A DNA stretch of 64,000 nt from Scyliorhinus canicula (Eukaryota). This document shows, piece after piece, positions 5,105 to 54,433 of this stretch (the stretch's first letter is position 1; every line of letters begins with the position of its first letter). The DNA is taken from contig NC_052162.1 in NCBI RefSeq assembly GCF_902713615.1, positions 124,272,653-124,336,652 of the forward strand, given 5' to 3'. Below the pieces are notes generated by a model, which saw nothing but the letters and a program-made list of their open reading frames with translations, was not told the origin of the DNA and ran no database searches. The position numbers were made by a program, and so were the translations under genes.

Positions 5105-6061
5105 AGATGTTGGAGTCAGGAGGAGGTTTCAGTCAGTGTGAAGCTCAATCTTCATTCACAAATAAATTAACCTGGTGAGACTTCTTACCGTGCGGCATTC
5201 ACAAAACCGGCGCTCTGATTGGCTGGAAGACCAGAGTCCTTCCGGTTCTCCTACTCTTTTCATTGGTCAATGTCAGCAGAGGGTGTGCACTGTCTTGGAC
5301 ATGCGCAGTCCCAGACCGGGGGAGAGGCGGGGAACACCGAGCGGCTTCTCGGTCTGGTCGGAGCCGTCAGTCGGCTGCCGGGAATCCTTGTCTCAAGGAG
5401 GTGCAGGGCGAGGAGGTAAAAAGAGTGGGGGTGGAGCTCCCGATTCCGGACACCGGACCTGCGCACTGGAACCCTGAGACGTCACCGCGATTCCTCTTGG
5501 CTGTTTCAGGCCTTGCTGCATTGTGACGTCACAGAGGCGGTCCCAGAACGCATGGTCTTTTATGGGACACACTGCGGATTGGCCATCAGCTCAGTGCGTC
5601 CGGCGGTGAAACCCCGCCCACACCTACGTGCGCCTGGTTATCGCTCTCCCCCCCCCCCCCCCACCCATCCCATTGATGGCATTTGGAGATTGACCAATGG
5701 GAACCTACGGAGGACCGGAGGTAATTTGGGCTTCCAGCAAACCAGGAGTGGATAGCACTGTGGCGTCACAGCGCCAGGGTCCCAGGTTCGATTCCCGGCT
5801 GGGTCACTGTCTGTGCGGAGTCTGTACATTCTCCCCATGTCTGTGTGGCTTTCCTCTGGGTGCTCCAGTTTCCTCCCACAATCCAAAGACGTGCAGGTTA
5901 GGTGGATTGGCCATGCTAAATTGCCCTTAGTGACCAAAAAAGGTTAGGCGGGGTTATTGGGTTACAGGGATAGGGTGGAAGTGAGGGCTTAAGTGGGTCG
6001 GTGCTGACCCGATGGGCCGAATGGCCTCCTTCTGCACTGTATGTTCTAAGCCCGCTCCCTG
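5105..6061. promoter_or_regulatory. P1: bidirectional CpG-rich promoter and first exons of ZNF-A (-) and ZNF-B (+)
   Basis: ATTGG boxes, CATGCGCA, perfect CRE TGTGACGTCACA 5522-5533, GC box; leftward donor catct|GTGGGT at 5104, rightward donor cctg|GTGAGC at 6062. Confidence 0.7.
5745..6047 (+). mobile_element. V-SINE inside P1
   Basis: B box ggttcgattccc, V core, atgttct tail. Confidence 0.8.
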
Positions 6062-6784
6062 GTGAGCAGGCCGCGAATCCCCAGGGAAAAGATTTTTACT
6101 CGGCTCCAAAAATCCAGACCTCAGTTCTCACCCTGGAAACTAGGAAAGGTCTTTGTATTTACTACGCTGATGCTCCACCTCTTCAAATCCTCTCTCTGGA
6201 GACTCGGCCTCAAATCCCCGAGGTCAGGGTTTTGTACTTACTGCTCCAGCACTCCACCCTCCGAGTCCACACCCTGGAGGCTAGGTATGGCGAAATAGGT
6301 ATTAGAGACTAGGTATTGGGTAATGGGAGAGAAAAAAATGTTCTCTAGAAATGAGAATTCTCTGTTCTGAATTTCTATCCTGTACTGACTGTGAAGTCTT
6401 CTGTAAACTCCTTTTACAGGATATTAGAAGAGGAGGAATTACAGACAGAAATCTCAAATGTAACGTCTCGATCTGACAGAGTCATCCGATTCCTTGGGAT
6501 CTGAATATCAACGGCCTTTGAATCGAGAAGGGGAAGGAAAAATGTTTGTCCGATCTGTCGGCAACAAAAGATTTTAAATATAATTGTGACTGGAAAAGCA
6601 CCGAGACACACACACCCGAGTGAGAGTGTTCCAGAGCACTGACTGTGGAAAGAGCTTTAACCAGTCACACAGCCTGAAAAAACATCACACCATTCACAGC
6701 GGGGAGAGACCGTACACGTGTCCTGTGTACGGACGAGGCTTCAACTGATATTCTGACCTGAAGAGATTCGAGGAGACCTAAAAC

Positions 6785-7636
6785 ATGGAGAAACCGTGGA
6801 TATGTGGGGATTGTGGGAAGGGATTCAGTGCCCCATCTCAACTGGAGATTCATCGACGCATTCACACAGGGGAGAGGCCGTTCACCTGCTCTGTATGTGA
6901 GAAGGGATTCACTCAGTTATCCCACCTACTTACACACCAGCGAGTTCACAGTGGGGAGAAGCCATTCACCTGCTCTCAGTGTGGGAAGGGATTCAGTGAT
7001 CCATCCGGCCTGCGGTCACACCAGCGCGTTCACACTGGGGAGAGGCCATTCAGCTGCTCTCAGTGCGAGAAGAGATTCAGTGATTCATCCACCCTGCGGA
7101 CACACCGCCGGGTTCACACAAGGGAGAGGCCGTTTAGCTGCTCTCAGTGTGGGAAGGGATTCACTCATTTATCCTATCTGAATGCACACCAGCTAGTTCA
7201 CTCTGGGGTGAGGCCATTCACCTGCTCTCAGTGTCAGAAGGAATTCACTCAGTTATCCCACCTACAGACACACCAGCGGGTTCACACTGGGGAGAAGCCG
7301 TTCACCTGCTCTCAATGTGGGAAGGGATTCAGTCAATTATCCAGCCTGCAGACACACCAGAGGGTTCACACTGGGGAGAAGCCGTTCACCTGCTCTCAAT
7401 GTGGCAAGGGATTCAGTCAGTTATCCAGCCTGCAGAGACACCAGCGAGTTCACACTGGGGAGAAGCCGTTCACCTGCTCTCAGTGTGGAAACAAATTCAC
7501 TGAGTTATCCAGCCTGCAGACACACCAGCGAGTTCACACCGGGGAGAGGCCGTTCACCTGCTCTCGATGTGGGAAGGGATTCACTACATTATCCAGCCTG
7601 CGGAGACATCAGCGAGTTCACACCGGGGAGAGTTAG
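6785..7636 (+). CDS. ZNF-B: 283-aa C2H2 protein, 10 fingers, no effector domain
   Basis: Intact ORF of CxxC..HxxxH units with TGE(K/R)PF linkers; aacATGG; acceptor cttttacag|G at 6419/6420. Confidence 0.92.
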
Positions 7637-7840
7637 CTCAGTTGGCTGGATAGCTGGTTTGTGATGCGTAGCGACTCTGACATCAGGGGTTCAACTCCTG
7701 TACCGGCTGAGGTTATCCATGAAGGCCTCACCTTCTCAGCATTGCCCCTCGCCTGTGGTGTGGTGACCCTCAGATACAATCACCACCAGTCAGCTCACTC
7801 TGTCAAAGGGGAAAGCAGTCTCTGGGACTTTGGTGACTCT
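7626..7840 (+). mobile_element. tRNA-derived SINE supplying the ZNF-B stop codon
   Basis: A box TAGCTCAGTTGG, B box GGTTCAACTCC; same family at 51888-52102 (-) and free-standing at 58997-59192. Confidence 0.8.
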
Positions 7841-7866
7841 TATTTCACACAAATACAACAAACATA

Positions 7867-8339: not shown

Positions 8340-9600
8340 CCGTGTCCTGCAGAAGAAGCGGCAACCCTGGATCTGTCAAATGGCCTGAATCAGCACCTTC
8401 AGGAGAATTGGGAGGGTGAATATTAGATACAGCAGAGTTAGAATGGAGGGAGAGTGTGTGGGATGGAGATTTACAGATTTTGGGGATGAGAGAGGAAAGA
8501 ATGTTCCAGAGAAACTACAATTGTCTGTTCTGAGTTTCTATCCTGTACTGACAGTGATGTATTTTGTAAATACATCATACCATTGACAGCGAGGAGAGAC
8601 CGTACACGTGTTCTCTGTGTGGGTAAGGCTTCAATTGTCTCATCTAGGGAGACACAAGGAGACCCAAAACATGGAGAAACAGTGGAAATACCGGGATTGT
8701 GGGAAGGGATTCAAAGCCCCATCTGCACTGGAAGCTCATCGGTGCATTCACACTGGGAGAGGCCATTCAGCTGCTCTCAGTGTGGGAAAGGATTCAGTCA
8801 GTCATTCACCCTGCAAACACACCAGAGGGTTCAGACTGGGGAGAGGCCATTGAACTGCTCTCAGTGTGGGAAGAGATTCAATCAATCAGCCAGACTGACG
8901 TCCCACCAGCTACTTCACACAGAGGAGAAGCCGTTCACCTGCTCTTAGTGTGGGAAAGGATTCAGACATTTATCCACCCTGCGGAGACATCATCCAGTTC
9001 ACCCCGGAGAGTGAGCATTCACCTGCTCTCAATGTGGGAAGTGATTGTCAGTCATTCACCCTGCAAACACACCAGAGGGTTCACACTGAGGAGAGGCCAT
9101 TCAGCTGCACTCTGTGGGAAGAGATTCTGTGTTTCCTTCTACCTGCTGAGTCACCAACAAGGTCACAAGGGATTACAGGGGTTGGATTCTGCTGTTATTG
9201 TTTCTGCTCTCAATTACACCCGGAACAGCATTGTGTTCATTCTGTCAGTTGGTCAATGGGGAGGGTCGGAGGGTTTATTTCTGCTGGACTGGCCGGTCTC
9301 ACGACTTTGCTTCCAGTGGGCTGATGCTCTTGAGCGTTGTGGCAAATACTTGGCTTCAAATTTCACAAGGATCACAGAGTGAAAGGGTGTTTGGCAGGTA
9401 GATGACGTATAGTTCCTGTTTCTGTTTGGAACCCCAAAGCATGCAGTTCAGATGAAGATAGGCTATGGTGGTTACATGGTTCTGTCTCAGAAGGAACCTG
9501 TCAAGCTGTGGAGGGGCAAGTTGATTGGGAACTTACATTAAAATGTGTAATGATACACAGGCAATCGCATTTAAGGAATGATCACATATTTACATAAAAT
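8340..9600 (+). pseudogene. ZNF-C pseudogene (middle exon, MEKQW start at 8671, decayed fingers, family 3'UTR)
   Basis: Frameshift near 8755, TAG at 8946-8948, further indels; 3'UTR homologous to ZNF-E and ZNF-G. Confidence 0.85.
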
Positions 9601-10499: not shown

Positions 10500-11606
10500 C
10501 TCATATCGTTGCCAAAATAAGTGAAACCCCGAGGTTTGGGAACTTGTTTTAGAAGAAACTCATGAAGAGAAAATAGAATATGAGAGCAGACTGTCTAGAA
10601 ACATAAAAAACGACTGGAAAAGCTCCTATAGGAATGTGAAAAGAAAAAGATTAGCAAAGACCAATGTGGGTCCATTCCAGGGAGAGACAGGAGAGTTTAT
10701 AATGGGGAGTAAGGAAATGGCAGAGAAACTAAACAATGTGTGTCTGTCTTCACAGAGGAAGATACAGAAATTGTCCTAAAAACACCAGAGAACCAAGGGA
10801 CCAGTGAGCACGAGGAACTGAAAGAGATTCGTATTAGTGAAAAAGCAGTACTGGAGAAATTAATGTGATTGAAAGTTAATAAATCCCCAAAAGCTGATGC
10901 TCTACATCCCAGAGTGTTGAAAGAGGCGGCTGTAGAGATAGTGGATACATTGGTGATCATCTTTCAAAATTCTGTAGATTCTGGAATGGCCATTCAGCCC
11001 GTCAAGCCTGCTCCACCATTTAATACGATCATGGCTGATCATCCACTTCAATGCCTTTTTCCCCACACTATCCCCATATCCCTTTGTGTTATTGGTATTT
11101 AGAAATCTGTCAGTCTCTGAGGACTTCCGGTGGCGGCGATGTCCGAGTGAGCCGCACATTCGGTGGGCTCTCACTCCGGCGGGCCTGAACAGCTGTTTCC
11201 CCGCGATAGCGGGACCACGGAGGCGGCAGAAAGGCTGCCGGGAATAGAAGAGGAGAGCGGGCTGCAGAAAATGAAAGTGTGGGAGGCCAGCAGGTGAGGA
11301 AGAAAGAGAGAGAGACGGAGGCAAGGAGGAAGCTGACCTGAAGGGTAAGATGGCGGACCCACGGACCTTCCTTCCTCCAGGACAAAGGGAAAAAAAAGTT
11401 TGGAGTTGCTGAGGAGGGACAGCTTGGACCCACTTCAGATGCCCAGGAGGGGGGAAAAATTTAAGGTGCTGGGCAAAGGAAAGCGGCAGCGAAGGCGCTG
11501 AGGAGCGGGCTGCGGCATATGGAACAGCGGGATTCCAGAAGGCAGAAGAAGAAGGAGAAAAAAGGGACAGAGACAAGGACCTGAAGAAAATTACCTGGGA
11601 CCTAAG

Positions 11607-12401
11607 ATGGCGGACACACGGACCCCGGACTCAGCAATCCAGTTGGCGCTGGATAACATGCTCCAGGTAATGAAGTCCAGTTTTGAAGCGCTGAAGCGGG
11701 ACAGCTTGGACCCAATCCAGAAAGCGGTGGATCAGCTGAACCAGAGGATGGACGCCCAGGATGTTAAAGTTAAGGAGCTGGGAGAGGCGGTGGAGGAGCA
11801 GGCGGATGCGCAAACGGTTGCAGCGGTAGAAGTGGACGGCCTGAAAGAGCGGCAGAGAAGACTGCTGGACAGAGTGGAGGAGCTGGAGAATAGAGTCCGC
11901 AGGAACAATCTGAGGATGGTCGGCCTCCCGGAGGGGGCGGAGGGAGCTGATGCTGCAGCGTTTGTAGCAGACCTGCTGAAGCAGCTGATGGGAGCCGAAG
12001 CCTTTCCACGACCGCTGGAGCTGGAGGGGGCACACAGAGTGCAGGCAAGGCAGGGGCGGCCGGGCGGATCCCCCCGCCCGATGGTGATTAGGTTCCACAG
12101 GTTCGTGGACAAGGAGCGGGTGCTGCAGAGGGCATAGAGCGCCAGGAGCAGCACGTGGAACAACAGTGTTCTCCGCATTTATCAGGATCTAAGCCAGGAG
12201 GTGGCTCGGCGGCGAGCAGCCTTTAAGAATGTCAAGGAGGTGCTGTTCAAGAAGCACGTGAAGTTTGGTCTGCTGTTCCCAGCCCGGCTATGGGTCACGC
12301 ACCAGGGTCAACACCACTACTTCTCCGAGCCCGAAGAAGCGATGGATTTTGTGAGGGACCTGGGGCTGGTCCCGAAAGGAGGCCCCAAGGACGCGAGTTA
12401 G
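11607..12401 (+). pseudogene. L1 ORF1p with one in-frame TAG
   Basis: Coiled coil, LENRVRRNNLRMVGLPEG, AHR, IYQDLS..RR, FGLLFPARL; TAG at 12135-12137. Confidence 0.9.
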
Positions 12402-12925
12402 GGCCCGAGGATTTTTGTGGGAAGGAACGCCGAATGTGCCTGGACCGCTGCTCAACGGTTTGCTGGGCCAAAGGGGCCAAGCGGAACATTTGAGACTCTT
12501 TCCTTTGTGCATGGACATTTATGTGCTTTTTCTCTTTTTTCTGTGGTTTTTTTCCCTTTTTATGTTTTTTTTTCCTGTTTGGGCTTTTTGTGCAGCTCGT
12601 GGAAGACACTGGAACCGGCTTGCCCCAGTGGGGGGGGAGGAGGACGGGGGAACAAGGGGAATGGGACAGGAAGGCGCTGGAGTGTTGAGTCACCGGGCTA
12701 GCAGATTGGCTAGTCAAGGAAGTCAGATGGGGGGGGGGGAAGTTACAGCCAGTAGATGGCGGGGGTGGGGGTATCGGGGGATGGGGTTAGGGGAGGGGGG
12801 GGTTGTTCTGCTGACGGGGGAGGGACTTGAAATAGGCACTGGAAAGGAGGTCGAGGGTGGAGGCAGCCAAAGGGCGAGCCAGGAATGGCGCGACGCACGG
12901 GTCAGGCGCCGGCCCGAGAAAGGCT

Positions 12926-15900
12926 ATGGCTGACCGGCGGGGTGGGGGGGGTGGGATGTGCCCCCCGACCAGGCTGATCACCTGGAACGTCAAGGGACTG
13001 AATGGGCCGGTTAAGAGGGCGCGGGTGTTCGCGCACTTGCGGGCCCTGAGGGCGGACGTAATTATGTTGCAGGAGACACATCTGAAAGTGTCAGACCAGA
13101 CCAGGCTAAGGAAGGGCTGGATTAGCCAGGTCTTCCACTCGGACTTGGACTCGAAGTCCAGAGGGGTGGCAATCATGATCAACAAGCGCGTGCAATTTGA
13201 GGCAGAGGGCATATCTGCAGACAGGGGGGGCAGATACCTGATGGTACGGGGCAGACTGGAGGGGAGAAGGGTGGTGCTGGTGAATATATATGCCCCGAAC
13301 TGGGATGACGTGGACTTTATTAAAAGAGTGCTGGGGAAGATCCCGGACTTGGATTCTCGCAAGCTAATAATGGGAGGGGACTTTAACATGGTCCTTGACC
13401 CGACTTTGGATCGGTCGTGTCCCAGAACGGGTAGACTCTCAGCAATGGCAAGGGAGCTGAAAGGGTTTATGGGGCAAATGGGGGCAGTGGACCCCTGGAG
13501 AGAGGGACAGCCAACAGGAAGGGGCTACTCGTTTTACTCGCACGTCCATAAAGTATATTCCAGGATAGATTTCTTTGTAATAAGCAGGGACTGTATGGGG
13601 GAGGTAAAGAACACGGAATACTCAGCAATTACCATTTCAGACCATGCCCCGCATTGGGTGGACCTGCAGTTCGGGGGAGCGAGTTATCAACGCCCGCAAT
13701 GGAGGCTTGATGTGGGACTGCTGTCGGAGGAGGGGATCTGCGAGAGGCTTCGGAAATGTATAAAAAATTACCTGCAGGTGAATGACACTGGGGAGGTCTC
13801 AGCGGCGACCGTGTGGGAGGCGCTAAAGGCAGTAGTTCGGGGGGAGCTGATTTCAATTGGGGCCCACAAAGCCAAGGCAGACCGGGCAGAGATGGATAGA
13901 TTGGTCAGGGAAATGGGCCGGATAGATGAAGAGCACGCGGAGTCCCCGGGGGAGGTTTTACTCAGGGAAAGGCGGAGGCTACAGGCGGAACTGGGGGCAC
14001 TATCCACGAGCAGGGCCGTGGAACAGCTTAGGAAGGCGAGGGGAGTGGTGTACGAGTATGGGGAAAAGGCTAGCAGACTGTTAGCGCAGCAACTCAGGAG
14101 GAGGGAGGCGGCCAGGGAAATAGGTAGAGTGAGGGACGAGGGGGGGCGCAAAGTGGAGGATCCGGCAGAATTGAATAGGGTATTCCGGGACTTCTATCGT
14201 AAGCTGTATACTTCGGAGCCGCCGGAAGAACCGGAGGGGATGAAAAGGTTTCTGGACGGGTTAACATTCCCAACAGTTGGGGGGGGGGCAAGTGGAAGAG
14301 CTGGGCGCCCCGATTAGAGTAGAGGAGGTATTGGGGGGCCTAAAGGCCATGCAGTCGGGGAAGTCCCCGGGGCCGGATGGATACCCAGTAGAGTTTTATA
14401 GGAAGTTCTCTGAGCTGGTGGGCCCGGTCTTGGCGAGGGTTTTCAATGAGGCAAGGGACAGAGGGACCCTGCCGCCGACAATGTCACAAGCCACCATATC
14501 TCTGATATTGAAGCGGGGTAAAGACCCGGAGGTGTGCGGGTCCTACAGGCTAATCTCCCTGATTAATGTAGACGCCAAGCTCCTGGCAAAGGTACTGGCG
14601 GGGGGAATGGAGGACTGTGTACCGGAGGTGATTGGGGAGGATCAAACGGGGTTCGTGAAAGGTCGGCAGCTGGCGGCCAATCTGAGGAGATTGCTCAACG
14701 TGATAATGATGCCCCCGGCGGGTAGAGAGGTGGAGGTAGTGGTGGCAATGGACGCCGAGAAGGCCTTTGACCGGGTGGAGTGGGACTATCTATGGGAGGT
14801 GCTCGGACGGTTTGGGTTCGGGGAGGGATTGGTGGATTGGATCAAATTATTATATCAGGCCCCGAGGGCCAGCGTCAGGACCAACAGAGAAGTGTCGGAG
14901 TACTTTAGGTTGTACCGAGGGACCAGGCAGGGCTGCCCGCTCTCCCCGCTGCTGTTTGCGCTGGCCATAGAGCCGCTGGCGATGGCGCTGAGAGCCGCAG
15001 AGGGTTGGAAGGGGATGGTGAGGGGCGGGGTTGAACACAGGGTTTCTCTTTATGCAGACGACCTGCTCCTGTACGTGTCGGACCCAGTGGCCGGGATGGG
15101 AACTATACTGGGAATGCTGAGGGAGTTCGGTCAGTTCTCAGGATACAAATTAAATACGGTCAAGAGTGAAATGTTTGTGGTCCAGGCAAGGGGCCAGGAG
15201 AACAGATTGAGAGGGCTACCGTTTAGGCTGGTTGAGGAAAATTTCCGGTATTTGGGAATCCAGGTGGCACGAGACTGGGGCAGGCTGCATAAGTTAAATT
15301 TGGCCAGGGTGGTGGAGCAAATGAAGGGAGAGTTTCGGAGATGGGATGCACTCCCGCTGTTGCTGGCAGGGAGGGTGCAGACTGTAAAGATGACAATCCT
15401 CCCTCGATTTTTGTTTATTTTTCAGTGCCTCCCGATCTTTATCCCACAGTCCTTCTTCAAAAGAGTTAACGGGCTGATCATGAGCTTTGTCTGGGCGGGA
15501 AAGTCTCCGCGGGTAAAGAAGGCGATGTTGGAGAGGAACCGCAGCGAGGGAGGGCTGGCTTTGCCGAGTCTGGTCAATTATTACTGGGCGACCAACATCG
15601 CTATGATAAGGAAGTGGATGGTGGGTACGGGGTCTATTTGGGAGCGGGTGGAGGCGGCTTCGTGCAGGGGCTCCAGTTTGGAAGCCCTGGTCACGGCTCC
15701 TCTACCGCTGCCGCCGGCCAAGTACACCACCAGCCCGGTGGTGGCGACCCTGCGGATATGGGGCCAGTGGAGGAGGCATGTGGGGGAGATGGGGGCGTCT
15801 GTCTGGGCGCCAATCTGCGACAACCATCGGTTTGCCCCCGGCAGTATGGATGGGGGGTTCCGAGTATGGCGGCGAGCAGGGGCGGGAAGGGTGGGTGATA

Positions 15901-16718
15901 TGTTCCTGGAAGGGAGCTTCGCGAGTTTGAGGAGCTTGGAGGAGAAATTTGGGGTGGTAAGGGGAAATGATTTTAGATAACTACAGTTGCGGGACTTTGT
16001 TCGTAGACAGGTCCCATCTTTCCCGCGCCTCCCGCCAATGGGGATCCTAGACAGAATAGTCTCTGGGAGGGATGAAGGGGAGGGTAGAGTCTCGGGTATT
16101 TATAAGGTGCTCATGAGGGAGGAAGGGTCCCAGACAGAGGAACTGAAACTTAAATGGGAGGAGGAGCTAGGCGGGGAAATGGAGGATGGGCTGTGGGCAG
16201 AGGCCCTGAGTAGGGTAAACTCGACCGCGACATGTGCTAGGCTCGGGCTGATCCAATTTAAGGTCGTTCACCGGGCCCATATGACGGTGGCTCGGATGAG
16301 CAAATTTTTCGGGATAGAGGACAAATGCGCTAGGTGCGCGGGAGGACCAGCAAACCATGTGCACATGTTTTGGGCATGCCCTGAGCTGAGGGGGTACTGG
16401 GAGGGATTTGCGGGGGTCATGTCCCAGGTGCTAAAAACAAGGGTGGTGATGAGCCCAGGGGTGGCAATTTTTGGGGTTTCGGAAGACCCGGGCGTCCAGG
16501 GGGAGAAAGAGGCCGATGTGCTGGCCTTTGCTTCCCTGATAGCCCGGCGACGAATATTATTGGCGTGGAGGGACTCAAAGCCCCCGAAGACGGAATGGTG
16601 GCTTGCGGACATGTCGAGTTTCCTGGGGATGGAAAAAATCAAGTTCGCCTTGAGGGGTTCTGTGCAGGGGTTCACCCGGAGGTGGCAACCATTTATTGAC
16701 TTCTTTGCGGGAGAGTGA
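12926..16718 (+). pseudogene. L1 ORF2p (APE endonuclease + RT) with one frameshift and one stop
   Basis: TWNVKG, LQETH, GGDFN, SDH; GTRQGCPLSP, YADD, C..C..H..C; frameshift in G run near 14279-14288; TAA at 15978-15980. Confidence 0.92.
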
Positions 16719-16957
16719 GCGTCAGCAGGGGGGGGGTTAGAGTAGAGTAGGAGGGAAAATATGGCGGGTAGTACCGGTGGGAGGGGAGCGGGCTTGTGCA
16801 ATATGTTACGGTGGAAGTATTGAAAGTACGTGGATGTTTGCACATTTTTGCCTTTTTTGCTTCCTTTCTGATGATGTCTGTAACTGTTTATAAAGCCAAA
16901 AACTACCTCAATAAAATTGTTTATTAAAAAAAAAAAGAAGAAATCTGTCAGTCTCTG

Positions 16958-21260: not shown

Positions 21261-21710
21261 AACATGTGGACATGGTTTGCTGGGCCCCAGAGCATCTAAC
21301 ACAACTGTCCTCACTCCCAAAAAACCGACTCATCCTTGTCCCAGTCATATGAGTCCTATGCAGCACCTTAAACTGTATAAGCCCAAGCCTCGCACATGAA
21401 GAGGAGGAGTTCACCCTTTCCAGGGCATCCGCCCACTTCCCCTCCTCAATCTCCTCACCCAGCTCCTCCTCCCATTTACCTTTCAGCTCCTCCACCGAGG
21501 CCTCGTCTACCTCCTGCATCACCTGGTACGCTTCCGAGATCCTCCCCTCTCCATCCCATACCCCCGAGAGCACCCTGTCCTAGACCCCAGGCGGCGGCAG
21601 CAGGGGGAACCCCGCCACCTGACAAATGCCCTTACTTGCATGTACCTAATGGTGTTCCCCGGGGGGAGCCCAAACTTCCCTTCCAGCTCACCCAGGCTCG
21701 TAAACTTCCC

Positions 21711-21822
21711 ATCTATTCCCGTACCAGCCTCCCCGGACAGGCGCCGGAATGTGGCGACTAGGGGCTTTTCACAGTAACTTCATTGAAGCCTACTCGTGAC
21801 AATAAGCGATTTATTATTTATA
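21711..21822 (+). mobile_element. 5'-truncated short SINE
   Basis: Nearly identical to 37980-38080. Confidence 0.75.
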
Positions 21823-24800
21823 TGAACAGGTCCCCCAGCCTCCTGACACCTGCCCTGTGCCAACTCAGGAACCCGCCATCAATTCTCGCCAGAACAAACC
21901 GGTGGTTCCCCCGTATCGGGGACCCCATCGAGGCCCCCACCTCCCCCCTGTGCAGCCTCCATTGCCCCCAAATTTTGAGGGTCGCTGCCATCACCGGGCT
22001 CGTGGTATACCTTGTTGGAGGGAGCGGCAGCGGCGCCGTTACCAGCGCTCCCAGGCTCGTGCCCACACAGGATGCCATCTCCATCCTCTTCCATGCTGCC
22101 CCCTCCCCGTCCATTACCCACTTACGCACCATCGCTGCGTTGGCAGCCCAATAATACCCACAGAGGCTGGGCAGCACTCCAGAAACACTCTTCTCTCCCT
22201 CGGGGTCCCGTGCGCCCACACAAATCCCGTAATGCTCCTGTTAACCCGCCTGAAAAAGGCCTTTGGGATAAGGATGGGAAGGCACTGGAACAGGAACAGA
22301 AACCTCGGGAGCACCGTCATCTTGACTGACTGCACCCTACCCGTCAGAGACAGCGGCAGCATGTCCCACCTCTTAAACTCCTCCTCCATTTGCTCCACCA
22401 GCCTTGTGAGGTTAAGCTTACGCAAGGCCCCCCAGCTCCTGGCCACCTAAACCCCAAGTACCTGAAGCTCCTCTCCGTCCTTTTCAGTGGGAGCCTCCCA
22501 ATCCCCCCCCCCCCACTCCCGGTCCCGCGAGTGTATCACAAACAGCTTGCTTTTCCCAAAGATAAGCTTATACCCTGAGAAATCCCCAAATTCCCGGAGA
22601 ATCCCCATCACCACCGGCATTCCCCACACCGGGTTCGCCACACACAAGAGGTCGTTCGTGTAGAGCGACTCTCGGTGCTCCTCCCCACCCCGGACCAGCC
22701 CCCTCCAATCCCCTGACTCCCTCAGCGCCATAGCCAGGGGTTCAATTGCCAGCGCAAAAAGTAGGGGGGACAGGGGACACCCCTGCCTCGTCCCTCGGTG
22801 TAGTCGAAAATACTCCGACCTCTTCTTATTCGTGGCCACACTCGCCATCGGGGCCTCATACAACAGTCTCACCCAACTGACAAACCCCTCCCCAAACCCG
22901 AACCTTTCCAGCGCCTCCCACAAGTACCCCCACTCGACCCGATCAAAGGCCTTCTCCGCATCTAGCACCACCACTATCTCTGCCTCCCCTTCTACCGCCG
23001 GCATCATTATAACGTTCAAGACCCTCCGTATATTAGTGTTCAGCTGCCTCCCCTTCACAAACCCCGTTTGATCCTCGTGGATAACCTGCGGCACACAATC
23101 CTCTATCCTCGCGGCTAAGATCTTTGCCAACAACTTGGCGTCTACATTTAAGAGTGAGATCGGCCTGTATGACCCACACTGCAGGAGATCCCTGTCTCGC
23201 TTAAGAATCAAGGAGATCAGCGCCCGAGACATCGTCGGAAGCAAAGACCCCCCCCCCTCCCTTGCCTCGTTAAAAGTCCTAACCAACAGGGGGCCCAGCA
23301 GGTCTGCATACGTCTTGTAAAATTCAACCGGGAACCCATCCGGCCCCGGCTCCTTCCCCGACTGCATGTTCCCTATCCCTTTGACCAGCCCCTCAAGCTC
23401 AACTGGCGCCCCCAGACCCTCCACCCTCGGGAATCTCAGCCGGTCTAAAAAGCGCCCCATCCCCCCTTCTCCGCCGGAGGTTCAGACCGATATAGTCTCT
23501 CATAAAAGTCCTGAAGACCCCATTAATGTCTACCCCACTCCGCACCACATTTCCTCCCTGATCCTTAACACCACCAATCTCCCTAGCTACATCCCGCTTA
23601 CGGAGCTGGTGTGCCAGCATCCTACTCGCCTTCTCCCCATACTCGTACACCGCACCCTGAGCCTTTCTCCATTGAGCCTCCGCCTTTCTGGTGGTCAACA
23701 AGTCAAACTCAGCACGAAGGCTGCGCCGCTCCCTCAGCAATCCCTCCTCCGGGGCCTCCGCGTACCTCCTGTCCACCCTCACCATCTCCCCCACCAATCC
23801 CTCCCTTTCTCTCTGCTCCTCTCTCTCTCTGTGGGCCCGAATGGAGATCAACTCTCCCCGAACCACCACCTTCAGCGCCTCCCAGACCATCCCCACTCGG
23901 ACCTCCCCATTATCGTTGTCCTCTAGATACCTCTCAATACATCCTCGAACCCGCCCCCTCACCACCTCGTCCGCCAGCAGCCCCACCTCCAAGCACCACA
24001 ACGGGGGCTGGTCCCTCTCCTCCCCCAGCTCGAGGTCCACTCAATGCGGGGCATGGTCCGAAATGGCTATCGCAGAGTACTTAGCGTCTACTACCCCCGC
24101 AATCAGCGCCCTACTCAAAACGAAAAAAATGGATCCGGGAGTAGGCCTTATGCACATGGGAGAAGTATGAAAATTCCCTGGCCCTTGGCCTCGCGAATCT
24201 CCATGGATCCACCCCTCCCATCTGGTCCATAAATCCCCTCAACACCTTAGCCGCCGCAGGCCTCCTACCCGTCCTGGAACTGGAGGATCCAAACCGTGTT
24301 GAAATCCCCCCCATTACCAGGCCCCCGCCTCCAAATCTGGAATCCGGCCCAACATGCTCCACATGAAACCTGCATCATCCCAATTTGGGGCGTATACATT
24401 GACCAGCACCACCCGCTCCCCTTGCAGCTTGCCACTCACCATCACATACCTCCCACCACTATCTGCCACCACACTCGACGCCTCAAACGACACCCTCTTC
24501 CCCACCACCCTCCGGTTTTTTGCATCCAGCCCCGAATGAAACACTTGGCCCACCCACCCCTTCCTCAACCTAACCTGATCCGCCACCTTCAGGTGCGTCT
24601 CCTGTAGCATAGCCACGTCCGCCTTCAGCCCCCTCAAATGCACGAACACGCGGGACCGTTTAACCGGCCCATTCAGTCCCCTCACATTCCAGGTGATCAG
24701 CCGGATCGGAGGGCCACCTGCCCCCCTCCCCCGTCGACTAGCTATCACCCTTCCGTAATCCGCCACGTGCCCGCGCCCCCCACTCAGCCCGTTTCCCAGG

Positions 24801-28844: not shown

Positions 28845-29370
28845 GGTCCGGGTGATCTTGTGTCTCACCGCGTTGGACAGTCAGTTGAAGCCTCGTCCAC
28901 ACACAGAACACCTATACAGTCTCTCCCTGCTGTGAATGGTGTAGTATTTTTTCAGGCTGTGTCACTGGTTATAGCTCTTTCCACAGTCAGTGCTCTGGAA
29001 CACTCTCACTCGGGTGTGTGTGTCTCAGTGCTATTCCAGACACACTGATGTTTAAAATCTCTTGAAGCAGACAGAATAGACAAACTTTTCTCCTTCTAGA
29101 TTCAAAGGCCGATGATCCCAAGAATTGAGTGACTCAGTCAGTTCTTGACGTGATATTTAGTTTGAGATATAGGCCTCGAACTCCTCTCGTTCGAACTTCC
29201 TGCAAACAGATTTTACAATAGTAATCATTGTCAGTACAGGATAGAAACACAGAACAGACAATTCTAGTTTCTATCGAACATTCTTTCCTCTCTCTCTTTC
29301 CCTAAAATGCTCTAAATCTCAATCCCACAGACTCTCCCTCCATTCTCACTCTGCTGTATCTAATATTCAC

Positions 29371-29450
29371 CGTCCCAATTCTCCTGAAGGTGCTGATTCA
29401 GGCTGATTGACAGATCCCTGCTCACTGCTTCCTGTCCTGGACACAGAGAC
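29371..29450 (-). other. Putative 80-nt middle 5'UTR exon of ZNF-D
   Basis: ttttcag|gtctct..gggacg|GTGAAT; homologous blocks at 969-1017 (-) and 8340-8415 (+). Confidence 0.55.
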
Positions 29451-32010: not shown

Positions 32011-32280
32011 TTACTGTCCCTTAAATGTCAGCCATCTCCTGGGGAAAGCAGCCCTTTAATTGTGAACATTAGGAAAGAAACCATTTTAGCCAGACAAATA
32101 AATGTGTCAAGCTGAGGGAGCAAAGGATGTCAATGTCTTTAAGAGAGTGAGATCTGGGCCAGCCTTTACTGCTCCCTCCCTGGATTCACTTCCTTTCCCT
32201 TCAGTTGCTGCAAGTCATCAATTGAAGGTGAGAATCAGAAAAGAAATGGAAAAAGGGAGAAAAGAAAGTGTTTAACTCAC

Positions 32281-32805
32281 AGATGTTGGAGACAGGAGGA
32301 CGGGTTCAGTCTGTGTGCAGCTCAAGCTGATTCAGGGTTGGAGGAACAACAGCTTTACTCGGCACAAACCTCCATCTCCAGCTTTCGCATTGAGACAATG
32401 GGGGAGCTCTGATTGGCGGAGGGAAGATTCCTTCCGGTTCTCCTACTTCCAATTGGTCACAACTCAGCAGTGTCACCGGAGGTGAGCTCCTTCTGCACAT
32501 GCGCAGAGTCCCCTCTCCCTGAGACATGCGCAGTCCCGGGTCGAGGGAGGGAATCCTCGATAGCCGGAACTGTCAGCCGGTTGCCAGGAAACCTTGTCTC
32601 GTGGATGCGTCGGGGAGGGGGAAAAAATTACGGGGACGGGGCTCCGTATTCGCGCGCGGGGCGGGTGCGCTCAAATGCAGTGACGTCACTGTGGAAGGGA
32701 TTGATTACTATTGGTTGATTTAGAGGACTAGCTGCTTTGTGATGTCACAATGTGGAGGTTGGACAATGAGTTTCAGACTAAAACTTCCTCCTCTGGGCAA
32801 CATCT
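32281..32805. promoter_or_regulatory. P2: promoter module of ZNF-D; rightward first exon orphaned
   Basis: Homologous to P1 and P3; CAGTGACGTCACTG 32678-32691, two CATGCGCA, ATTGG; left donor GTGAGT at 32280; right donor mutated to GGGAGC at 32806. Confidence 0.7.
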
Positions 32806-33092
32806 GGGAGCAAATCAATGTCTCCCCCTTTCAGAAGGTCATAAGATATAGGAGCAGAATTCGACCATTTGACCCATCGACTCTACTCTGACATTCAATC
32901 ATGGCTGATCTCATCCTGGCCTCAACGCCACTGTCCTGAGAGTTCTCCATAACCCTTCAACCCGATTAAAAATCTGTCTAATTCCTCCCTAAATTTACTC
33001 ACTGTCCCAGCTTCACCACACTCTGGGGTAGTTAATTCCACAGATTCACAGCCCATTGAAGAAGCAGCTCCTCCTCAACTCTGTTCTGAATT

Positions 33093-36240: not shown

Positions 36241-36504
36241 GTGTGGGATCTGATTGACTAGGGAAACCAGTCCTTTAACTGTGAACATGAAGAAAGAGAC
36301 CATCCTTTTAGTCAGACAAATAAATGTGTCAAGCTGAGGGAGCAAAGGATGTCAATGTCTTTGAGAGAGACCTGGGCCAAGCTTTCCAGAGTCTGCACCC
36401 TCCCTGGATTCACTTCCTTTCCCTTCAGTTGCTGCAAGTAACCAATTGAATTTCAAAATGAGAAAAGAAATGGAAAGGGGGAGAAAAGAAAGTGTTTTAC
36501 TCCC

Positions 36505-36957
36505 AGATTTTGGAGACAGGAGGGAGTTTGTCTGTGTGAAGCTCAATCTTCAGTCACACAAAACTTGCCGTCTGATTGGCTGGACTCCCAGAGTTCTTCC
36601 GGTCCCCCAAATGTTTCCATTGGTCAATACGTCAGCTGGCAGGTCCGGGGGCGGGCTCTCTCCTGCACATGCGCAGCTTCCCTTCGCCCTTGGACATGAG
36701 CAGTACCGGGTCGCGGGCGGGAGGGAGATCACTGAGCGGCTTCTCGCTCTGGCCGGAGCTGTCAGCCGGTTGCCTGGAAACCTTGTCTGGAGGAGGTGTC
36801 GGGTGAGGAGGAACAATGAGCGGCGCCGAACCTGCGCACTGGAACCAGGAGACGTCACCTCTGAGAAGCTGATTTCTATTGGTTGATTCAGGCAGGGGTC
36901 CATTGTGACGACATAAAACGGAAGTTGGACTAAAACGTCCTCCTGTCTCCAACATCT
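36505..36957. promoter_or_regulatory. P3: promoter module of ZNF-E; leftward first exon orphaned
   Basis: Flanked by inverted copies of the exon1/intron block (about 36262-36545 and 36925-37200); right donor GTGAGT at 36958; left donor mutated to GGGAGT at 36504; ATTGG, CATGCGCA, CGGAAGT. Confidence 0.72.
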
Positions 36958-37319
36958 GTGAGTAAAACACTCCCCCCCCGTTTCCATTTCTTTTCTCGTT
37001 CTGACCTTCAATTGGTCACTTGCAGCAACTGAAGGGAAAGGAAGTGAATCCAGGTCTCTTCTCTCTTAAAGACATTGACATCCTTTGCTCCCTCAGCTTG
37101 ACACATTTATTTGTCTGGCTAAAAGGGTGGTCTCTTTCCTAATGTTCACAATTTAAGGCCTAGTTTTCCCAAGAGATGGCCGACATTTAAGGGAACAGTA
37201 AGTTAATATAGGACAGAGATATGTCTTATGTCCTTACATGATATAGATTAGATATATTGTTTGTAGTTCTGTACTAAATTACATTTAATATTATTTCTAG
37301 TTTTGTAACATAGTACTGT

Positions 37320-38090: not shown

Positions 38091-38513
38091 TGTTCTTATG
38101 TAACTTCTATGATTCTGTACTGACAGTGATGATTCCTTTTCCAGGATAATAGAAGAGGAGGAATTACAGACAGAAATCTCAAAAATCACGTCTGAGATCT
38201 GTCAGATTCACTGGATTCGTTGGGGCCTGAATATTATTGGCCTTTGAATCTAGAAGGAGAAATGTTTGTCCGATCTGTTAGCTTCAAAAGATTTTAAACA
38301 TCAGTGTGACTGGAAAAGCACCGAGACACACACACACCCGAGTGAGAGTGTTCCAGAGCACTGACTGTGGAAAGAGCTTGAACCAGTTACACAGTCTGAG
38401 AAAAACATTGCACCATTCACAGTGGGGAGAGACCGTACATGCGTTCTCTGTGTGTGAATAAGACTTCAACAGTGTGATTGTCCGACCTGGGCAGACACGA
38501 GGAGACCCAAAGC

Positions 38514-39524
38514 ATGGAGAAACCGTGGAAATGTGGGGACTGCGGGAAGGGATACAGAGCCCCTTCTCTGTTGGAGATTCATCAACGCATTCACACTGGG
38601 GAGAGTCCATTCACCTGCTCTGTGTGTGGGAAGGGATTCAGTCGTGCATGCACCCTGCAGAGACGTCAGCGAGTTCACACTGGGGAGAAGCCATTCACCT
38701 GCTCTCAGTGTGGGAAGGGATTCAGACATTCATCAACCCTGCAGAGACATCAGCGAGTTCACACTGGGGAGAAGCCATTCACCTGCTTTCAGTGTGGGAA
38801 GAGATTCATTCAGTCATACACTCTGCGAACACATGAGAGAATTCACACTGGCGAGAGGCCATTCAACTGCTCTCAGTGTGGGAAGGGATTCTCTCAGTTA
38901 TCGCACCTGCAATCACACCAGCGAGTTCACACTGGGGAGAGGCATTTAACCTGCCGTCAGTGTGGGAAGGAATTCACTCAGTTATCCCACCTGCAGTTAC
39001 ACCAGAAAATTTGCCCTCGGGAGAAGCCATTCATCTGCTCTCAGTGTGGGAAGGGATTCACTCGGTTATCCCACCTTCAGAGTCACCAGCGAGTTCACAC
39101 TGGGGAGAGGCCGTTCACCTGCTCTCAGTGTGGGGAAGGATTCAGTGATTCATCCACCCTACGGAAACATCAGAGAGTCCACACTGGAGAGAGACCATTC
39201 TCCTGCTCTCAGTGTGGGAAGGCATTCAGTGATTCATCTAACCGGAAGAAACATCAGCGACTTCACACTGGGGAGAGGCCATTCACCTGCTCTCAGTGTG
39301 CGAAGGGATTCACTGTGTTATCCAAACTGAAGTCACACCAGCGAGTTCACACCAGGGAGAAGCCATTCACCTGCTCTGTGTGTGGGAAGGGATTCAGACA
39401 GTCATCCAACCTGCTGAGACATCAGCGAGTTCACACTGGGGAGAGGCCATTCACCTGCTCTCAGTGTGGGACAGGATTTTATGATTCATGGCGCCTGCTG
39501 AGACATCAACAATTTCACAAGTGA
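38514..39524 (+). CDS. ZNF-E: 336-aa C2H2 protein, 12 fingers
   Basis: agcATGG start; intact ORF; finger 2 lacks first His, finger 6 is C2HC; acceptor ttttccag|G at 38144/38145. Confidence 0.92.
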
Positions 39525-51887: not shown

Positions 51888-52102
51888 AGAGTCCCCAAAG
51901 TCCCAGAGGCTGCTTTCCTCTTTGACAGAGTGAACTGACTGGTGGTGATTGAATCTGACAGTCACCACACCACAGTCGAGGGGCAATGTTGAAAAGGTGG
52001 GGCCTTCATGGATAACCTCAGCCGGTACGGGAGTTGAACCCCTGATATTGGAGTCACTGCGCATGACAAACCAGCCATCCAGCCAACTGAGTTAACTCTC
52101 CC
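51888..52102 (-). mobile_element. tRNA-derived SINE supplying the ZNF-F stop codon
   Basis: Paralogous copy of 7626-7840 with the same junction. Confidence 0.8.
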
Positions 52103-53110
52103 CGGTGTGAAGTTGCTGGTGTCTCCGCAGGTTGGATAACGTAGTGAATCCCTTCTCACACTGAGAGCAGGTGAGGGGCCTCTCCCCAGTGTGAACTCGC
52201 TGGTGTGTTTGCAGGCTGGAGAAATTAGTGAATCCCTTCCCACACCGAGAGCAAGTGAATGGCCTCCCCCCAGTGTGAATTCGCTGGTGCTTCCGCAGGC
52301 TGGATAATTGACTGAATTCCTTCCCACACTGAGAGCAGGTGAACGGCTTTTCCCCAGTGTGAACTCGCTGGTGTATTTGTTGGTGGGATAACTGAGTGAA
52401 TCCCTTCCCACACTGAGAGCAGGTGAACGGCTTCTCCCCAGTGTGAATTTGCTTGTGTGAACGCAAGCCAGATGGATCTGTAAATCCCTTCCCACACTGA
52501 GAGCAGGTGAACGGCCTCTCCCCAATGTGAACTCGCTGGTGTGAACGCAAGCCAGATGGATCAGTAAATCCCTTCCCACACTCAGAGCAGGTGAATGGCA
52601 TCTCCCCAGTGTGAACACGCTGGTGTCGCCGCAGGCAGGATAAATGACCAAATCCCTTCCCACATTGAGAGCAAGTAAATGGCTTCTCCCCAGTGTGAAC
52701 TCGTTGGTGTGTTTGTAGGTGGGATAACTGAGTGAATCCCTTCCCACACTGGGAGCAGGTGAACGGCCTCTCCCCAGTGTGAAGCCGCTGGTGTGAACGC
52801 AGGCCAGATGGATCACTGAATCCCTTTCCACACTGAGCGTAGGTGAACGGCTTCTCCCCAGTGTGAACCCGCTGGTGTGTTTGTAGGTGGGATAATTGAG
52901 TGAATCCCTTCCCACACTGGGAGCAGGTGAACGGCCTCTCCCCAGTGTGAACTCGCTGGTGTGACAGCAGGCCGGATAAGTCAGTGAATCCCTTCTCACA
53001 GTGAGAGCACATGAATGGCCTCTCCCCGGTGTGACTGCGTCGATGAATCTCAAGATGAGATGGTGCATTGAATCCTTAATACAGTCCCCACAAAACCATG
53101 GTTTCTCCAT
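52092..53110 (-). pseudogene. ZNF-F: paralog of ZNF-B with a 1-nt deletion in finger 1; 11 fingers open from ATG 53012
   Basis: [12 protein letters not shown] then frameshift near 53074; 306-aa finger ORF 53012-52092; exon start at 53467. Confidence 0.8.
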
Positions 53111-53750
53111 GTTTTGTGTCACCTTGTGTCTCTCCTGGTCAGAAAATCAGTCGGAAGTCTCATCCACACACTGAACACGTGCACGGTCTCTCCCAGCTGT
53201 GGCTTGTGTGATGATTTTTCAGGCTGTGTAGCTGGTTAAAGATCTTTCCACAGTCAGTGCTCTGGAACACTCTTATCGGGTGTGTGTGTCTCAGTGCTTT
53301 TCCAGTCACACTGATGTTTAAAATCTTTTGAGGCTGTCTGATCCGGCAAACATTCCCTTCTGGATTCAAAGGCCGATGATAGTCAGATCCCAAAGAATCT
53401 GGTGACTCTGTCAGATCGAGACGTTATGTTTGAGATTTCTGTCTGTAATTCCTCCTCTTCTCATATCCTGTAAAAGGAGTTTACAAAAGACATCACAGTC
53501 AGTACAGGATAGAAATTCAGAACAGACAATTCTAGTTTCTGGAGAACATTCTTTCCTCTCTCATTCCCCAATACCGAGTCTCTAATGCCTATTTCTCCCT
53601 GTCTTCAGGGAGCGGCAGAGTCTGGGAGCAGTCAGTATAAAGACCTTTCCTCGGGAATTCACCGCCTAGTTTCCAGGGAGTGGACTGAGGGGTCCGGATT
53701 TTCGTAGCTGAAGAAAGAAACCTTTCCTTGGGGATTTACGGCCTACTCAC

Positions 53751-54433
53751 CAGGGTGTGGATTAGGAGCCGGAAATTTAATACCTTCCTCCGGGGATCTG
53801 CGGCCGAGTCTCCAGCCAATGGAATCGGAGCTGGAGGACTGAGAGCTGCCTAGTCCTCCAGCCAATCAGAGTCAATGAGGGGCGGGGCTGTAGGACTCAG
53901 ACAGCCGCTTGGTCCTCCAGCCAATCAGAGTGAATAAGGGGCGGGACTGGAGGACTGAGAGCCGCCTGGTCCTCCAGGCAATCAGAGTGAATGAGGGGCG
54001 GGGTCTAACCTTATTGTGTTCCCGTCCCCATCTTCCACTCACTCAACAAATATTTTGGGCATTAACTTCAGGTCCTGGGAAAGAATTTCCAGAACCAGAA
54101 TCAGGAGTTGACAACTATTCATCAGGGTTTGCGGCTCCACAAAGTATTTCCAAATTCTCCCACCCACTTCGCTCGGGCTTTCCAAAACGAAGTCCCATTA
54201 ATCGGAAAGCGCATGCTCCAAACACCGACAACGCCGCATGCGTCCCAGCGTCGACCGGTAATGCGCATGTGCACTGAAGAGCACACCCAACGACTTCCTG
54301 CTGAGGTATTAACCAATGAAAAGAGTGGACCCAGCGGAAGGACACTGGACTTTCAGCCAATCAGAGCGCTTGCTTTGTGTGACTGGTGATTTAGCTTCAC
54401 ACAGACTGAAATCTCCTCCTGTCTCCAGCATCT
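53751..54433. promoter_or_regulatory. P4: bidirectional promoter and first exons of ZNF-F (-) and ZNF-G (+)
   Basis: Multiple CCAAT and GGGGCGGG boxes, GCGCATGC, CGCATGCG, TGCGCATGTGCA, ACTTCCTG; donors GTGAGT at 53750 (-) and 54434 (+). Confidence 0.75.
53806..54004. repeat. 57-59-bp tandem repeat of a CCAAT + GC-box unit (about 3.5 copies)
   Basis: gtcctccag(c/g)caatcagagt..gggcggg starts at 53853, 53912 and 53969. Confidence 0.85.

Follow-up and report, generated by a model that had tools for sequence, protein, structure and literature searches.

A catshark zinc finger megacluster of head-to-head genes around probable bidirectional promoters, and a hAT transposon that probably carries a piece of it

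In the catshark Scyliorhinus canicula, roughly a thousand copies of C2H2 zinc finger (ZNF) genes that encode fingers only are arranged in a cluster that extends for ~16 Mb along contig C17, from about 111 to 127 Mb, and the 64,000-nucleotide stretch of DNA analysed here (the window) is a slice of it. The layout of this cluster is real and has been copied many times. Its 5' ends are of three types (alpha, beta, and alpha', a variant of alpha), its cores are of two (alpha/alpha or alpha/alpha', and beta/alpha), and it is the product of ordinary gene duplication of variable-sized pieces. In all likelihood the cores act as bidirectional promoters, either shared or abutting, and a hAT transposon found across the genome carries cargo that most likely came from the alpha cassette of this cluster. 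Taken as a whole, this explanation (cluster architecture, likely bidirectional cores, duplication in pieces of variable size and capture by a hAT element) is in our view probably correct.

Alpha arms number about 600 in the cluster, and gene leaders about 1000. An alpha-arm 25-mer spanning the capture boundary has 602 matches, and 99 among the first 100 exact ones lie at C17:111.2-117.6 Mb; a 29-mer from the leader has 995 matches, with 97 among the first 100 exact ones on C17. Both cassette types (alpha/alpha and beta/alpha) recur only within this ~16-Mb region: every scored match of the P3-like and P4-like cassettes described below is on C17, as are all near-full matches of the beta module, while the 57-bp repeat of the beta module also gives some weak partial matches on other contigs. 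In the gene model, exon 1 is short and non-coding, the intron measures 0.3-4.3 kb, and a leader and the whole finger open reading frame (ORF) would share a single large exon; exon 1 contains no ATG. The finger ORFs of genes B, D, E and G, the four read in frame (the frame submitted for F matched nothing), hit only C2H2-type finger families in Pfam, with no KRAB or other effector domain N-terminal to the fingers and no KRAB, SCAN or FiNZ-type domain seen in these ORFs. They are thus not KRAB-ZNF genes as far as these ORFs go, and additional unannotated exons may exist.

The preliminary description of this DNA had proposed four GC-rich modules (P1 to P4) with a shared exon-1/intron block at five places, and the block is indeed found at all five by a 25-nt motif, BLAST and MAFFT. 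The motif, which covers the end of exon 1 and the donor, has five matches in the window at ≤3 mismatches (5099-5123, 32275-32299 and 36499-36523 on the minus strand, 36939-36963 and 54415-54439 on the plus strand) and none in 100 shuffles. The block is ~300 bp or longer (4799-5160, 32010-32325, 36258-36529, 36933-37225 and 54378-54651), and a sixth, variant stub of it lies at 32783-32815. All eight outward-facing exon-1 ends also lie where they had been placed, with alpha-type ends exactly at 5105, 32281, 36505, 36957, 54433 and 32805 and beta donors at 6061 and 53751; six have GT donors, and GG stands at 32805 and 36505. The distance between the outward ends is 452 bp in P3, 524 bp in P2, 682 bp in P4 and 956 bp in P1 (651 bp if an inserted SINE is removed), which is in all four modules below the 1 kb used for divergent 5' ends of bidirectional promoters, judged on exon-1 ends rather than start sites. 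The suggestion that the cassettes are near-palindromic fits only P2 and P3, which are alpha/alpha. In P1 and P4 an alpha half is joined to a different half, and what had been taken for the shared block on the right of P1 and the left of P4 is instead a second, beta promoter with its own exon 1 and short intron.

From left to right, gene A (minus strand) is cut by the window edge, with exon 2 at 1-793 (leader and start of the C2H2 array, recognised by 84-bp finger repeats and leader alignment), its acceptor AG at 794-795 and a branch point at 833. The alpha arm of P1, which is the start of A's intron 1, covers 4799-5105 on the minus strand, with donor GTGGGT adjoining 5105; the alpha exon 1 and core (5106-5560) are colinear with the P3 core and contain two CCAAT boxes and ETS, NRF1-like and CRE motifs. 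Gene B (plus strand) comes next: its beta promoter and first exon cover 5561-6061, with the donor after 6061, its short beta-type intron 1 covers 6062-6419 and is homologous to 53750-53468, and its exon 2 at 6420-7636 has a leader and a 10-finger ORF (6785-7636). The leader region of B carries stops. A tRNA-type SINE is inserted in B's exon 1 at 5740-6045, and the same repeat occurs again at 56.6-56.9 kb. Gene D (minus strand) has its exon 2, a leader and 16-finger ORF, at 27249-29199 and the start of its intron 1 in the P2 alpha arm at 32010-32281, with donor GTGAGT. The P2 exon 1 and core (32282-32782) contain CCAAT, ETS and NRF1-like sites and a full CRE, TGACGTCA. On the right, on the plus strand, is the alpha' stub (32783-32815), with GG in donor position followed by inserted repeats, and this stub is a recurrent variant arm rather than a one-off truncation.

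P3 is a true inverted repeat, in which arms of 79-110 nt with 90-92% identity flank a 403-bp core; the two short exons 1 and this core cover 36506-36956. Its left alpha arm (36258-36505, minus strand) is an orphan with no gene leftward and GG in donor position, a state also seen in its 96-99% copies. The right alpha arm (36957-37225, plus strand, donor GTGAGT after 36957) is the start of intron 1 of gene E, whose exon 2 with leader and finger ORF is at 38145-39524 (plus strand). At P4, gene F (minus strand) has exon 2 with a leader and finger array at 51962-53467, a short beta-type intron 1 at 53468-53750, and a beta exon 1 and promoter at 53751-54005 containing three 57-bp repeats with CCAAT and GC-box motifs. 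Gene G (plus strand) has an alpha half-core and exon 1 at 54262-54433, the P4 alpha arm as the start of intron 1 at 54434-54651, and exon 2 with a leader and 12-finger ORF at 57026-58555.

The cores have the composition expected of TATA-less, CpG-enriched promoters with ETS, NF-Y and NRF1-type sites. GC content of the modules is 0.53-0.58 versus 0.48 for the window, CpG observed/expected is 0.58-0.69 versus 0.47, and no TATAAA occurs in the modules. The CCAAT, ETS and NRF1-like sites named in the preliminary description are footprinted across copies: motif columns are 0.89 conserved versus 0.67 elsewhere in the core, a value reached by 8 of 10,000 random placements. Genes stand head-to-head around TATA-less, mildly CpG-rich cores of 0.45-0.7 kb with conserved NF-Y (CCAAT), ETS and NRF1-like sites. 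The highest conservation is found at the donor and the first ~110 nt of "intron 1" (0.86-0.91 at +1 to +110, versus 0.53-0.64 in the core). This intronic peak is not predicted by a simple "promoter plus exon 1" model.

For splicing, four of the five acceptors predicted earlier (6420, 38145, 57026 and 53467) are exact, each with a branch-point-like CTGTACTGAC, a pyrimidine tract and AG, while the homologous acceptor of D is at 29200/29199 and not at 29450. All six genes keep the invariant branch-point-like element and AG. The donor GTGAGT is kept in 29 of 51 arms, and about a third of arms have GG or another non-GT donor. None of the predicted junctions, 53751>53467 and 54433>57026 included, is among those listed in a single read-mapping analysis, a listing swamped by a SINE and made from four runs of which three were only guessed to be RNA. 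Reads were mapped at ≥95% identity, at which paralogues can contribute. Over exon 2, the X20 raw reads lie on opposite strands in the two genes flanking P4 (F 7.2 v 0.1; G 0.5 v 101); those over the alpha arm run in G's sense, at low depth and again with possible contributions from paralogues. The cores may drive divergent transcription, and the genes may be spliced at the predicted sites.

As had been proposed, the arrangement that recurs through the cluster is one of ZNF genes placed head-to-head about short CpG-rich cores: at least nine of the cassettes retrieved are flanked on either side by leader and finger exons that face outward. The cassettes sampled across the cluster were chosen for their similarity to P3, which biases the sample to two-sided cores. 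The whole 1079-bp beta/alpha cassette of P4 is present at full length at 11 places on C17 (the window and 10 others, 81-99% identity), every beta module found adjoins an alpha half, and P3-like alpha/alpha cassettes occur at full or near-full length at many C17 sites (78-99%). Two such two-gene units have been copied at 98-99.6% identity, Mb apart; in one the copies (L011, L013 and L018) are 98.9-99.6% alike, and in the other (L022, L023 and L024) about 98% over 3.8 kb. The idea of a fixed, promoter-centred two-gene unit of expansion stands only in part, since head-to-head pairs recur and core halves travel together but unit size varies. A 96% copy at 121.08 Mb begins 1.26 kb left of P3 and carries only P3, gene E and the orphan arm, D and P2 have been copied as a one-gene unit, and in L017, L020 and L021 a 3.2-kb unit, made up of one gene and a whole cassette, is repeated head to tail; because these single-gene units and tandems were copied too, the expansion unit is not fixed. 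Segmental and tandem duplications of varying length would have enlarged the cluster, usually taking along the whole two-sided core and often both genes. Many partners would later have disappeared, and the traces of this would be orphan arms, mutated donors and insertions of SINE, LTR or LINE type.

It had been stated that the proposal would fail if the block were dispersed independently of ZNF genes, like a transposon terminus. This is half the case: about one fifth of all block copies are dispersed genome-wide, but as cargo together with zinc fingers inside a 1.6-kb hAT element, not as its terminus. The element has a perfect 16-nt TIR (CAGTGGCGTGCAGAGG) and an 8-bp TSD (≤1 mismatch) in 16 of 18 copies, which places it in the hAT superfamily, and its copies are 95-98% alike. 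With no transposase, host-gene fragments and transposition as a unit, it is a non-autonomous Pack-TIR element, and it contains no ATG-started ORF of ≥50 aa in cargo orientation. The cargo consists of 395 bp of alpha promoter, exon 1 and intron with four degenerate fingers, in the order and orientation of the gene, with internal deletions and SINE filler. A 25-mer across the cargo junction has 134 matches, on all chromosomes (at least 134 copies), and a 29-mer from the 5' end of the hAT has 1479, so that the cargo line makes up ~1/10 of the family. In an unrooted tree the cargo is one clade (100/100) with a stem of 0.09, set among cluster copies differing by up to 0.3. Midpoint rooting, family size and cargo structure point to capture from the cluster by the hAT: a single alpha half-core together with exon 1, the first 180 nt of intron 1 and four fingers would have been acquired by the element and then carried to at least 134 places.

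The transfer could also have run the other way: a hAT insertion, co-opted before expansion, would then be the ancestor of the cluster's alpha promoter with its exon 1 and the beginning of the intron. Promoters derived from transposable elements are common, and the unrooted tree has hAT and cluster copies on either side of a single branch. We regard this as very improbable, given that homology among cluster copies extends past the cargo both ways (along the arm to +330 and further, and into the second core half), that the cassettes in the window contain no hAT TIR or other hAT-specific sequence, that the cargo keeps the layout of a gene, with deletions and SINE filler inside it, and is present in only a tenth or so of the family, and that divergence is 2-5% between hAT copies but as much as 30% between those of the cluster. 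Even less credible, and close to negligible, is a MITE-like origin, in which the alpha/alpha cassette, with inverted ends of 270 bp, would be mobile in its own right and would have seeded the cluster by transposing. P3 does resemble a 0.9-kb element with long inverted ends, and arms seemed to stop at the same base in three copies in the window; homology nevertheless continues past this apparent end in most copies, the arms inside one cassette are only about 80% alike, cluster-type arms are restricted to one chromosomal region, no target-site duplication could be defined and neighbouring genes were duplicated along.

A more serious alternative is that the modules are relics: the head-to-head order would come from inverted segmental duplication, each gene would have its own promoter half with no co-regulation, and most would be silent pseudogenes. 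Several genes look dead, and the stops in B's leader region, the orphan arms at P2 and P3 and the non-GT donors mean that many cassettes may be relics. The SINE within B's exon 1, the retention of a useless second arm in single-gene duplicates and head-to-tail tandems, the lack of the predicted joints among the junctions listed, and core halves that align separately, one of them alone in the hAT, all fit this reading. Against it, motif islands are footprinted in copies otherwise 67% conserved, beta and alpha halves stay together at 11 places despite identities ranging from 81 to 99%, donor, branch point and acceptor are conserved, and reads over the leaders lie on the expected opposite strands. 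Relics are on balance unlikely as the general explanation, and bidirectional cores, with whatever co-regulation they may provide, are preferred.

Other ZNF megaclusters are known. The human chr19 KRAB-ZNFs and the zebrafish chr4 ZNFs are lineage-specific poly-ZNF megaclusters, mainly head-to-tail. Like the catshark cluster, they gather hundreds of tandemly duplicated genes for C2H2 arrays in a single region, turn over rapidly and include numerous pseudogenes; they differ from it in their effector domains, of which the catshark ORFs tested have none of the KRAB, SCAN or FiNZ type. To our knowledge, a palindromic shared promoter has not been reported as their repeat module. A comparable layout is that of the silkmoth chorion locus, a large single-locus family in which A/B gene pairs, built of genes whose first exon is small and whose second is the major one, are transcribed divergently from a common region of ~330 nt, and in which pairs were amplified as units, with some inverted blocks and interspersed unpaired pseudogenes (PMC4639761). 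The catshark cluster is likewise a single-locus family of tight divergent pairs with a small exon 1 and large exon 2, at ~10 times the scale and with promoters that are predicted; its copied repeat is in part a two-gene unit, as the 98-99.6% copies and the 11 P4 cores show, next to one-gene units and 3.2-kb tandems. Chorion pairs are always heterotypic with a coding exon 1, and their promoters are tissue-specific and driven by TATA, C/EBP and GATA, whereas the catshark genes have a non-coding exon 1, some of their cassettes are homotypic palindromes, and their cores lack TATA and contain CCAAT, ETS and NRF1-like sites. In this the cores resemble vertebrate CpG-island bidirectional promoters, which use GABP/ETS, NF-Y, NRF-1 and YY1 (PMC2077898, PMC3082894), with 5' ends <1 kb apart, no TATA and CpG enrichment. 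Most known examples are isolated pairs of old standing that join housekeeping genes unrelated to each other, while the catshark promoter is repeated hundreds of times between paralogues, with a CpG observed/expected of only 0.58-0.69 and with start sites and factor binding that are predicted. In a survey of animal Pack-TIR elements hAT is the commonest carrier, and multicopy cases are a small proportion, the example given having 3 copies (PMC8277862). The catshark element is of this kind (non-autonomous hAT, TIRs, 8-bp TSDs, host-gene fragments), with at least 134 copies and a cargo of promoter, exon 1, intron start and coding repeats from a multigene family.

Current views are not overturned by these findings, as bidirectional promoters, families amplified in pairs and transposons carrying gene fragments are all known. 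What they provide is a concrete scheme of the repeats that make up a shark ZNF megacluster of ~1000 genes, with 5' ends of three kinds, two-sided cores of two kinds and gene bodies with a single intron. In this cluster the two halves of a core have long been inherited together, and duplicated pieces differ in size. The findings also point to the alpha cassette as the most likely source of the abundant Pack-hAT cargo, and they bring out an unexpectedly constrained stretch just within intron 1. It is a rather remote prospect, suggested by this stretch being the most conserved across about 600 copies and having its own CCAAT and ETS-like sites, that a half-core, exon 1 and the first 110-200 nt of "intron 1" are the real functional unit, a self-contained promoter module maintained by selection. 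If so, the Pack-hAT captured exactly that unit and distributed a promoter of the ZNF cluster across the genome in at least 134 portable copies, which could start transcripts, splice into host genes via the retained donor, or act as decoys tying other loci to the regulation of the cluster.

The cluster in the window is built on modules with two outward-facing exons 1: P1 (5105-6061) lies between genes A and B, P2 (32281-32805) heads D, P3 (36505-36957) heads E, and P4 (53751-54433) lies between F and G. These modules are mildly GC-enriched (GC 0.53-0.58 vs 0.48), as the preliminary description had it, with a CpG observed/expected ratio of 0.58-0.69 vs 0.47. The 25-nt motif at the exon-1 end and donor has five matches in the window at ≤3 mismatches, while 100 shuffles gave none. 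A shared block of at least 300 bp, here called alpha, has this motif as its core; BLAST and MAFFT place the block at 4799-5160, 32010-32325, 36258-36529, 36933-37225 and 54378-54651. All outward exon-1 ends fall at the bases named earlier, but at 32805 and 36505 the donor reads GG, not GT. The modules had also been described as near-palindromic. This is true of P2 and P3, which are alpha/alpha or pair alpha with a variant arm, alpha'; in P3, inverted-repeat arms that are 90-92% alike flank a core (the region between both exons 1) of 403 bp. It is not true of P1 and P4, which are heterotypic: instead of the shared block, P1 has in its right half, and P4 in its left, a second type of 5' end, beta.

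In beta, the donor context is CCCTG followed across the splice site by GTGAGYAGGCCG, and then by a homologous short intron (6062-6419 in B; 53750-53468 in F). The beta promoter of P4 contains three 57-bp repeats with CCAAT and GC boxes. This repeat (53831-54002) has 77-79% matches on the small unplaced contigs C105, C106, C637, C642, C54, C262 and C53, and further ones at the same identity at 130.5-132.9 Mb of C17, the contig that holds the cluster. In P1, a SINE (5740-6045) is inserted into exon 1 of B. The stub on the right of P2 (32783-32815) belongs to alpha', which recurs in fetched genomic loci (L008:2182-2301, L010:1501-1609, L012:1501-1622, L024:1498-1577). The donor position is GG in all alpha' copies seen. 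The leader, which begins finger exon 2, and the finger exons still follow in L010, L012 and L024. The genes at these three loci must rely on a different donor or do without one, so a dead donor alone does not describe alpha'.

Every acceptor has the invariant sequence CTGTACTGAC upstream of it, together with a pyrimidine tract and AG. Of the five acceptors predicted earlier, four are exact (6420, 38145, 57026 and 53467), while the homologous acceptor of D is at 29199 rather than 29450; that of gene A is at 793. The intron stretch just upstream of the D acceptor (29200-29520, minus strand) also occurs in L010 and L024, in their alpha' introns. The TTTTCAG/G near 29450 that had been taken for the acceptor lies inside this stretch and could mark a mini-exon.

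The 84-bp C2H2 finger repeats of the window form seven arrays, at 1-409(-), 6861-7632(+), 8747-9127(+), 27521-28767(-), 38590-39478(+), 52096-53034(-) and 57454-58510(+). For B, D, E and G, whose ORFs were read in frame, Pfam matched finger families alone; the frame submitted for the F ORF gave no Pfam match. Identity gave no signal for A-G and B-F as orthologous partners, the gene bodies all being 80-85% alike. Downstream of B there is a second, shorter finger array (8543-9382, plus strand) that has no promoter cassette and keeps a branch-point/acceptor remnant of its own (8543-8593); it resembles a gene copy that has been truncated. Between B and D are two LINE copies, inverted relative to each other (11100-16800, plus; 21500-26400, minus), which are GC-rich with strong GC skew and have endonuclease (PF03372) and reverse transcriptase (PF00078) ORFs.

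For the P4 pair, reads from three contig runs presumed to be RNA ('RNA?') and one raw oligo-dT run were placed on 53100-57400. Raw-read coverage is on opposite strands, 7.2 v 0.1 in F exon 2 and 0.5 v 101 in G exon 2, figures to which paralogues of ≥95% identity can contribute. The same holds for the alpha-arm reads (the arm being the start of intron 1), which run in the sense of G. Among the joints listed for 53100-57400, which were dominated by a SINE at 56.56-56.99 kb, none of the predicted splice joints was present. The SINE copies at 56556-56987 and 5740-6045 have very high depth in 4/4 runs, up to ~7x10^5 summed contig depth.

The window itself occupies C17:124272653-124336652. In a search of the 4.22-Gb genome, P3-like cassettes scored on C17:111.6-126.8 Mb only, many of them spanning all 921 bp at 78-99%. 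The P4 cassette (1079 bp) is found in full length at 11 places on C17 including the window, the other 10 being 81-99% identical, and an alpha half adjoins every beta module found. A 25-mer from the distal arm has 602 matches (99 of the first 100 exact ones listed are on C17:111.2-117.6 Mb) and a 29-mer from the leader has 995 (C17 holds 97 of the first 100 exact ones listed), which puts the cluster at about a thousand gene copies and ~600 alpha arms. Outside C17, the arm 25-mer occurs exactly at C8:147068256 and the leader 29-mer at C6:206818400, C9:17732134 and C15:25338032; these exact copies could be pieces of the cluster that were translocated, or else small satellite clusters.

The proposal that the two-gene cassette is the unit of expansion captures part of this growth. 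For cluster-wide statistics, 30 loci picked by similarity to P3 were used together with pattern coordinates. In this sample, selected by P3 similarity, at least nine fetched cassettes have outward leader and finger exons within 1.5 kb on either side (L011, L012, L013, L018, L019, L022, L023, L024 and L026). Whole two-gene units have been copied: L011, L013 and L018, which lie as much as 12 Mb from one another, share 98.9-99.6% identity across 3.8 kb, and L022, L023 and L024 are ~98% identical. However, one-gene units and tandems are copied too. In L017, L020 and L021 a 3.2-kb unit, a single gene with an entire cassette, is repeated head to tail, a 96% copy at 121.08 Mb starts 1.26 kb left of P3 and comprises only P3 and E with an orphan arm, and D with P2 plus 760 bp was duplicated as a one-gene unit (94%).

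Dispersal of the block independently of ZNF genes had been named as evidence against such a cassette. Only in form does the observed dispersal count against it: the donor motif has 750 matches on all chromosomes, but the block rides as cargo together with fingers. All of the dispersed sites examined (20/20) sit inside one ~1.62-kb element with 16-nt TIRs (CAGTGGCGTGCAGAGG), an 8-bp target-site duplication in 16/18 copies and 95-98% identity between copies, which makes it a non-autonomous hAT. In gene order, its cargo runs from an alpha half-core through exon 1, the donor, a 180-nt piece of intron 1 and SINE filler to four fingers, which contain one stop and one broken finger. A junction-specific 25-mer has 134 matches and the 5' end of the element 1479, so only a minority of this established hAT family belongs to the cargo line. 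As to direction, the sequences favour capture from the cluster by the hAT: the 19 copies with cargo group in a single clade (100/100) with a stem of 0.09 in an unrooted tree in which cluster copies differ by up to 0.3, cluster homology extends past the cargo at both ends, and no hAT sequence was found flanking the window cassettes. A common outer arm end, as of a transposon terminus, was seen in three window copies and dissolved as more copies were read. About half of the cargo-bearing copies repeat a 108-bp CCAAT-ETS-CCAAT half-core segment in tandem, with one or two additional copies; these carriers (L033, L036-L038, L041, L044-L046 and L048) form a subclade (100/99).

Within the cluster, the two CCAAT, the ETS and the NRF1-like sites are conserved at 0.81-0.98 vs 0.67 in other core columns (20 dereplicated half-cores), a level equalled by 8/10,000 random placements. 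Across 30 dereplicated, diverged arms, conservation unexpectedly peaks inside intron 1 rather than in exon 1 or the core: it is 0.86-0.91 over the donor and first ~110 nt of the intron and 0.73-0.81 out to +200, compared with 0.62-0.76 in exon 1 and 0.53-0.64 in the core. The idea that the conserved arm holds a small RNA was rejected (chance-level Rfam matches only; fold z-score -1.2, not unusual). The alpha arm also has a pyrimidine run able to pair with a purine run ~40 nt away.

The hAT carrier belongs with the Pack-hATs in the survey by Tan et al. (PMC8277862), but its copies far exceed the three of the multicopy example shown there. The nearest analogue of the paired ZNF cluster is the silkmoth chorion locus (PMC4639761). 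The promoter type, known here from sequence features, matches vertebrate bidirectional promoters, and the intron-1 start (36957-37160 and all alpha arms) has its own CCAAT box and ETS-like AGGAAGTGA; this conserved stretch would be the downstream half of the promoter.
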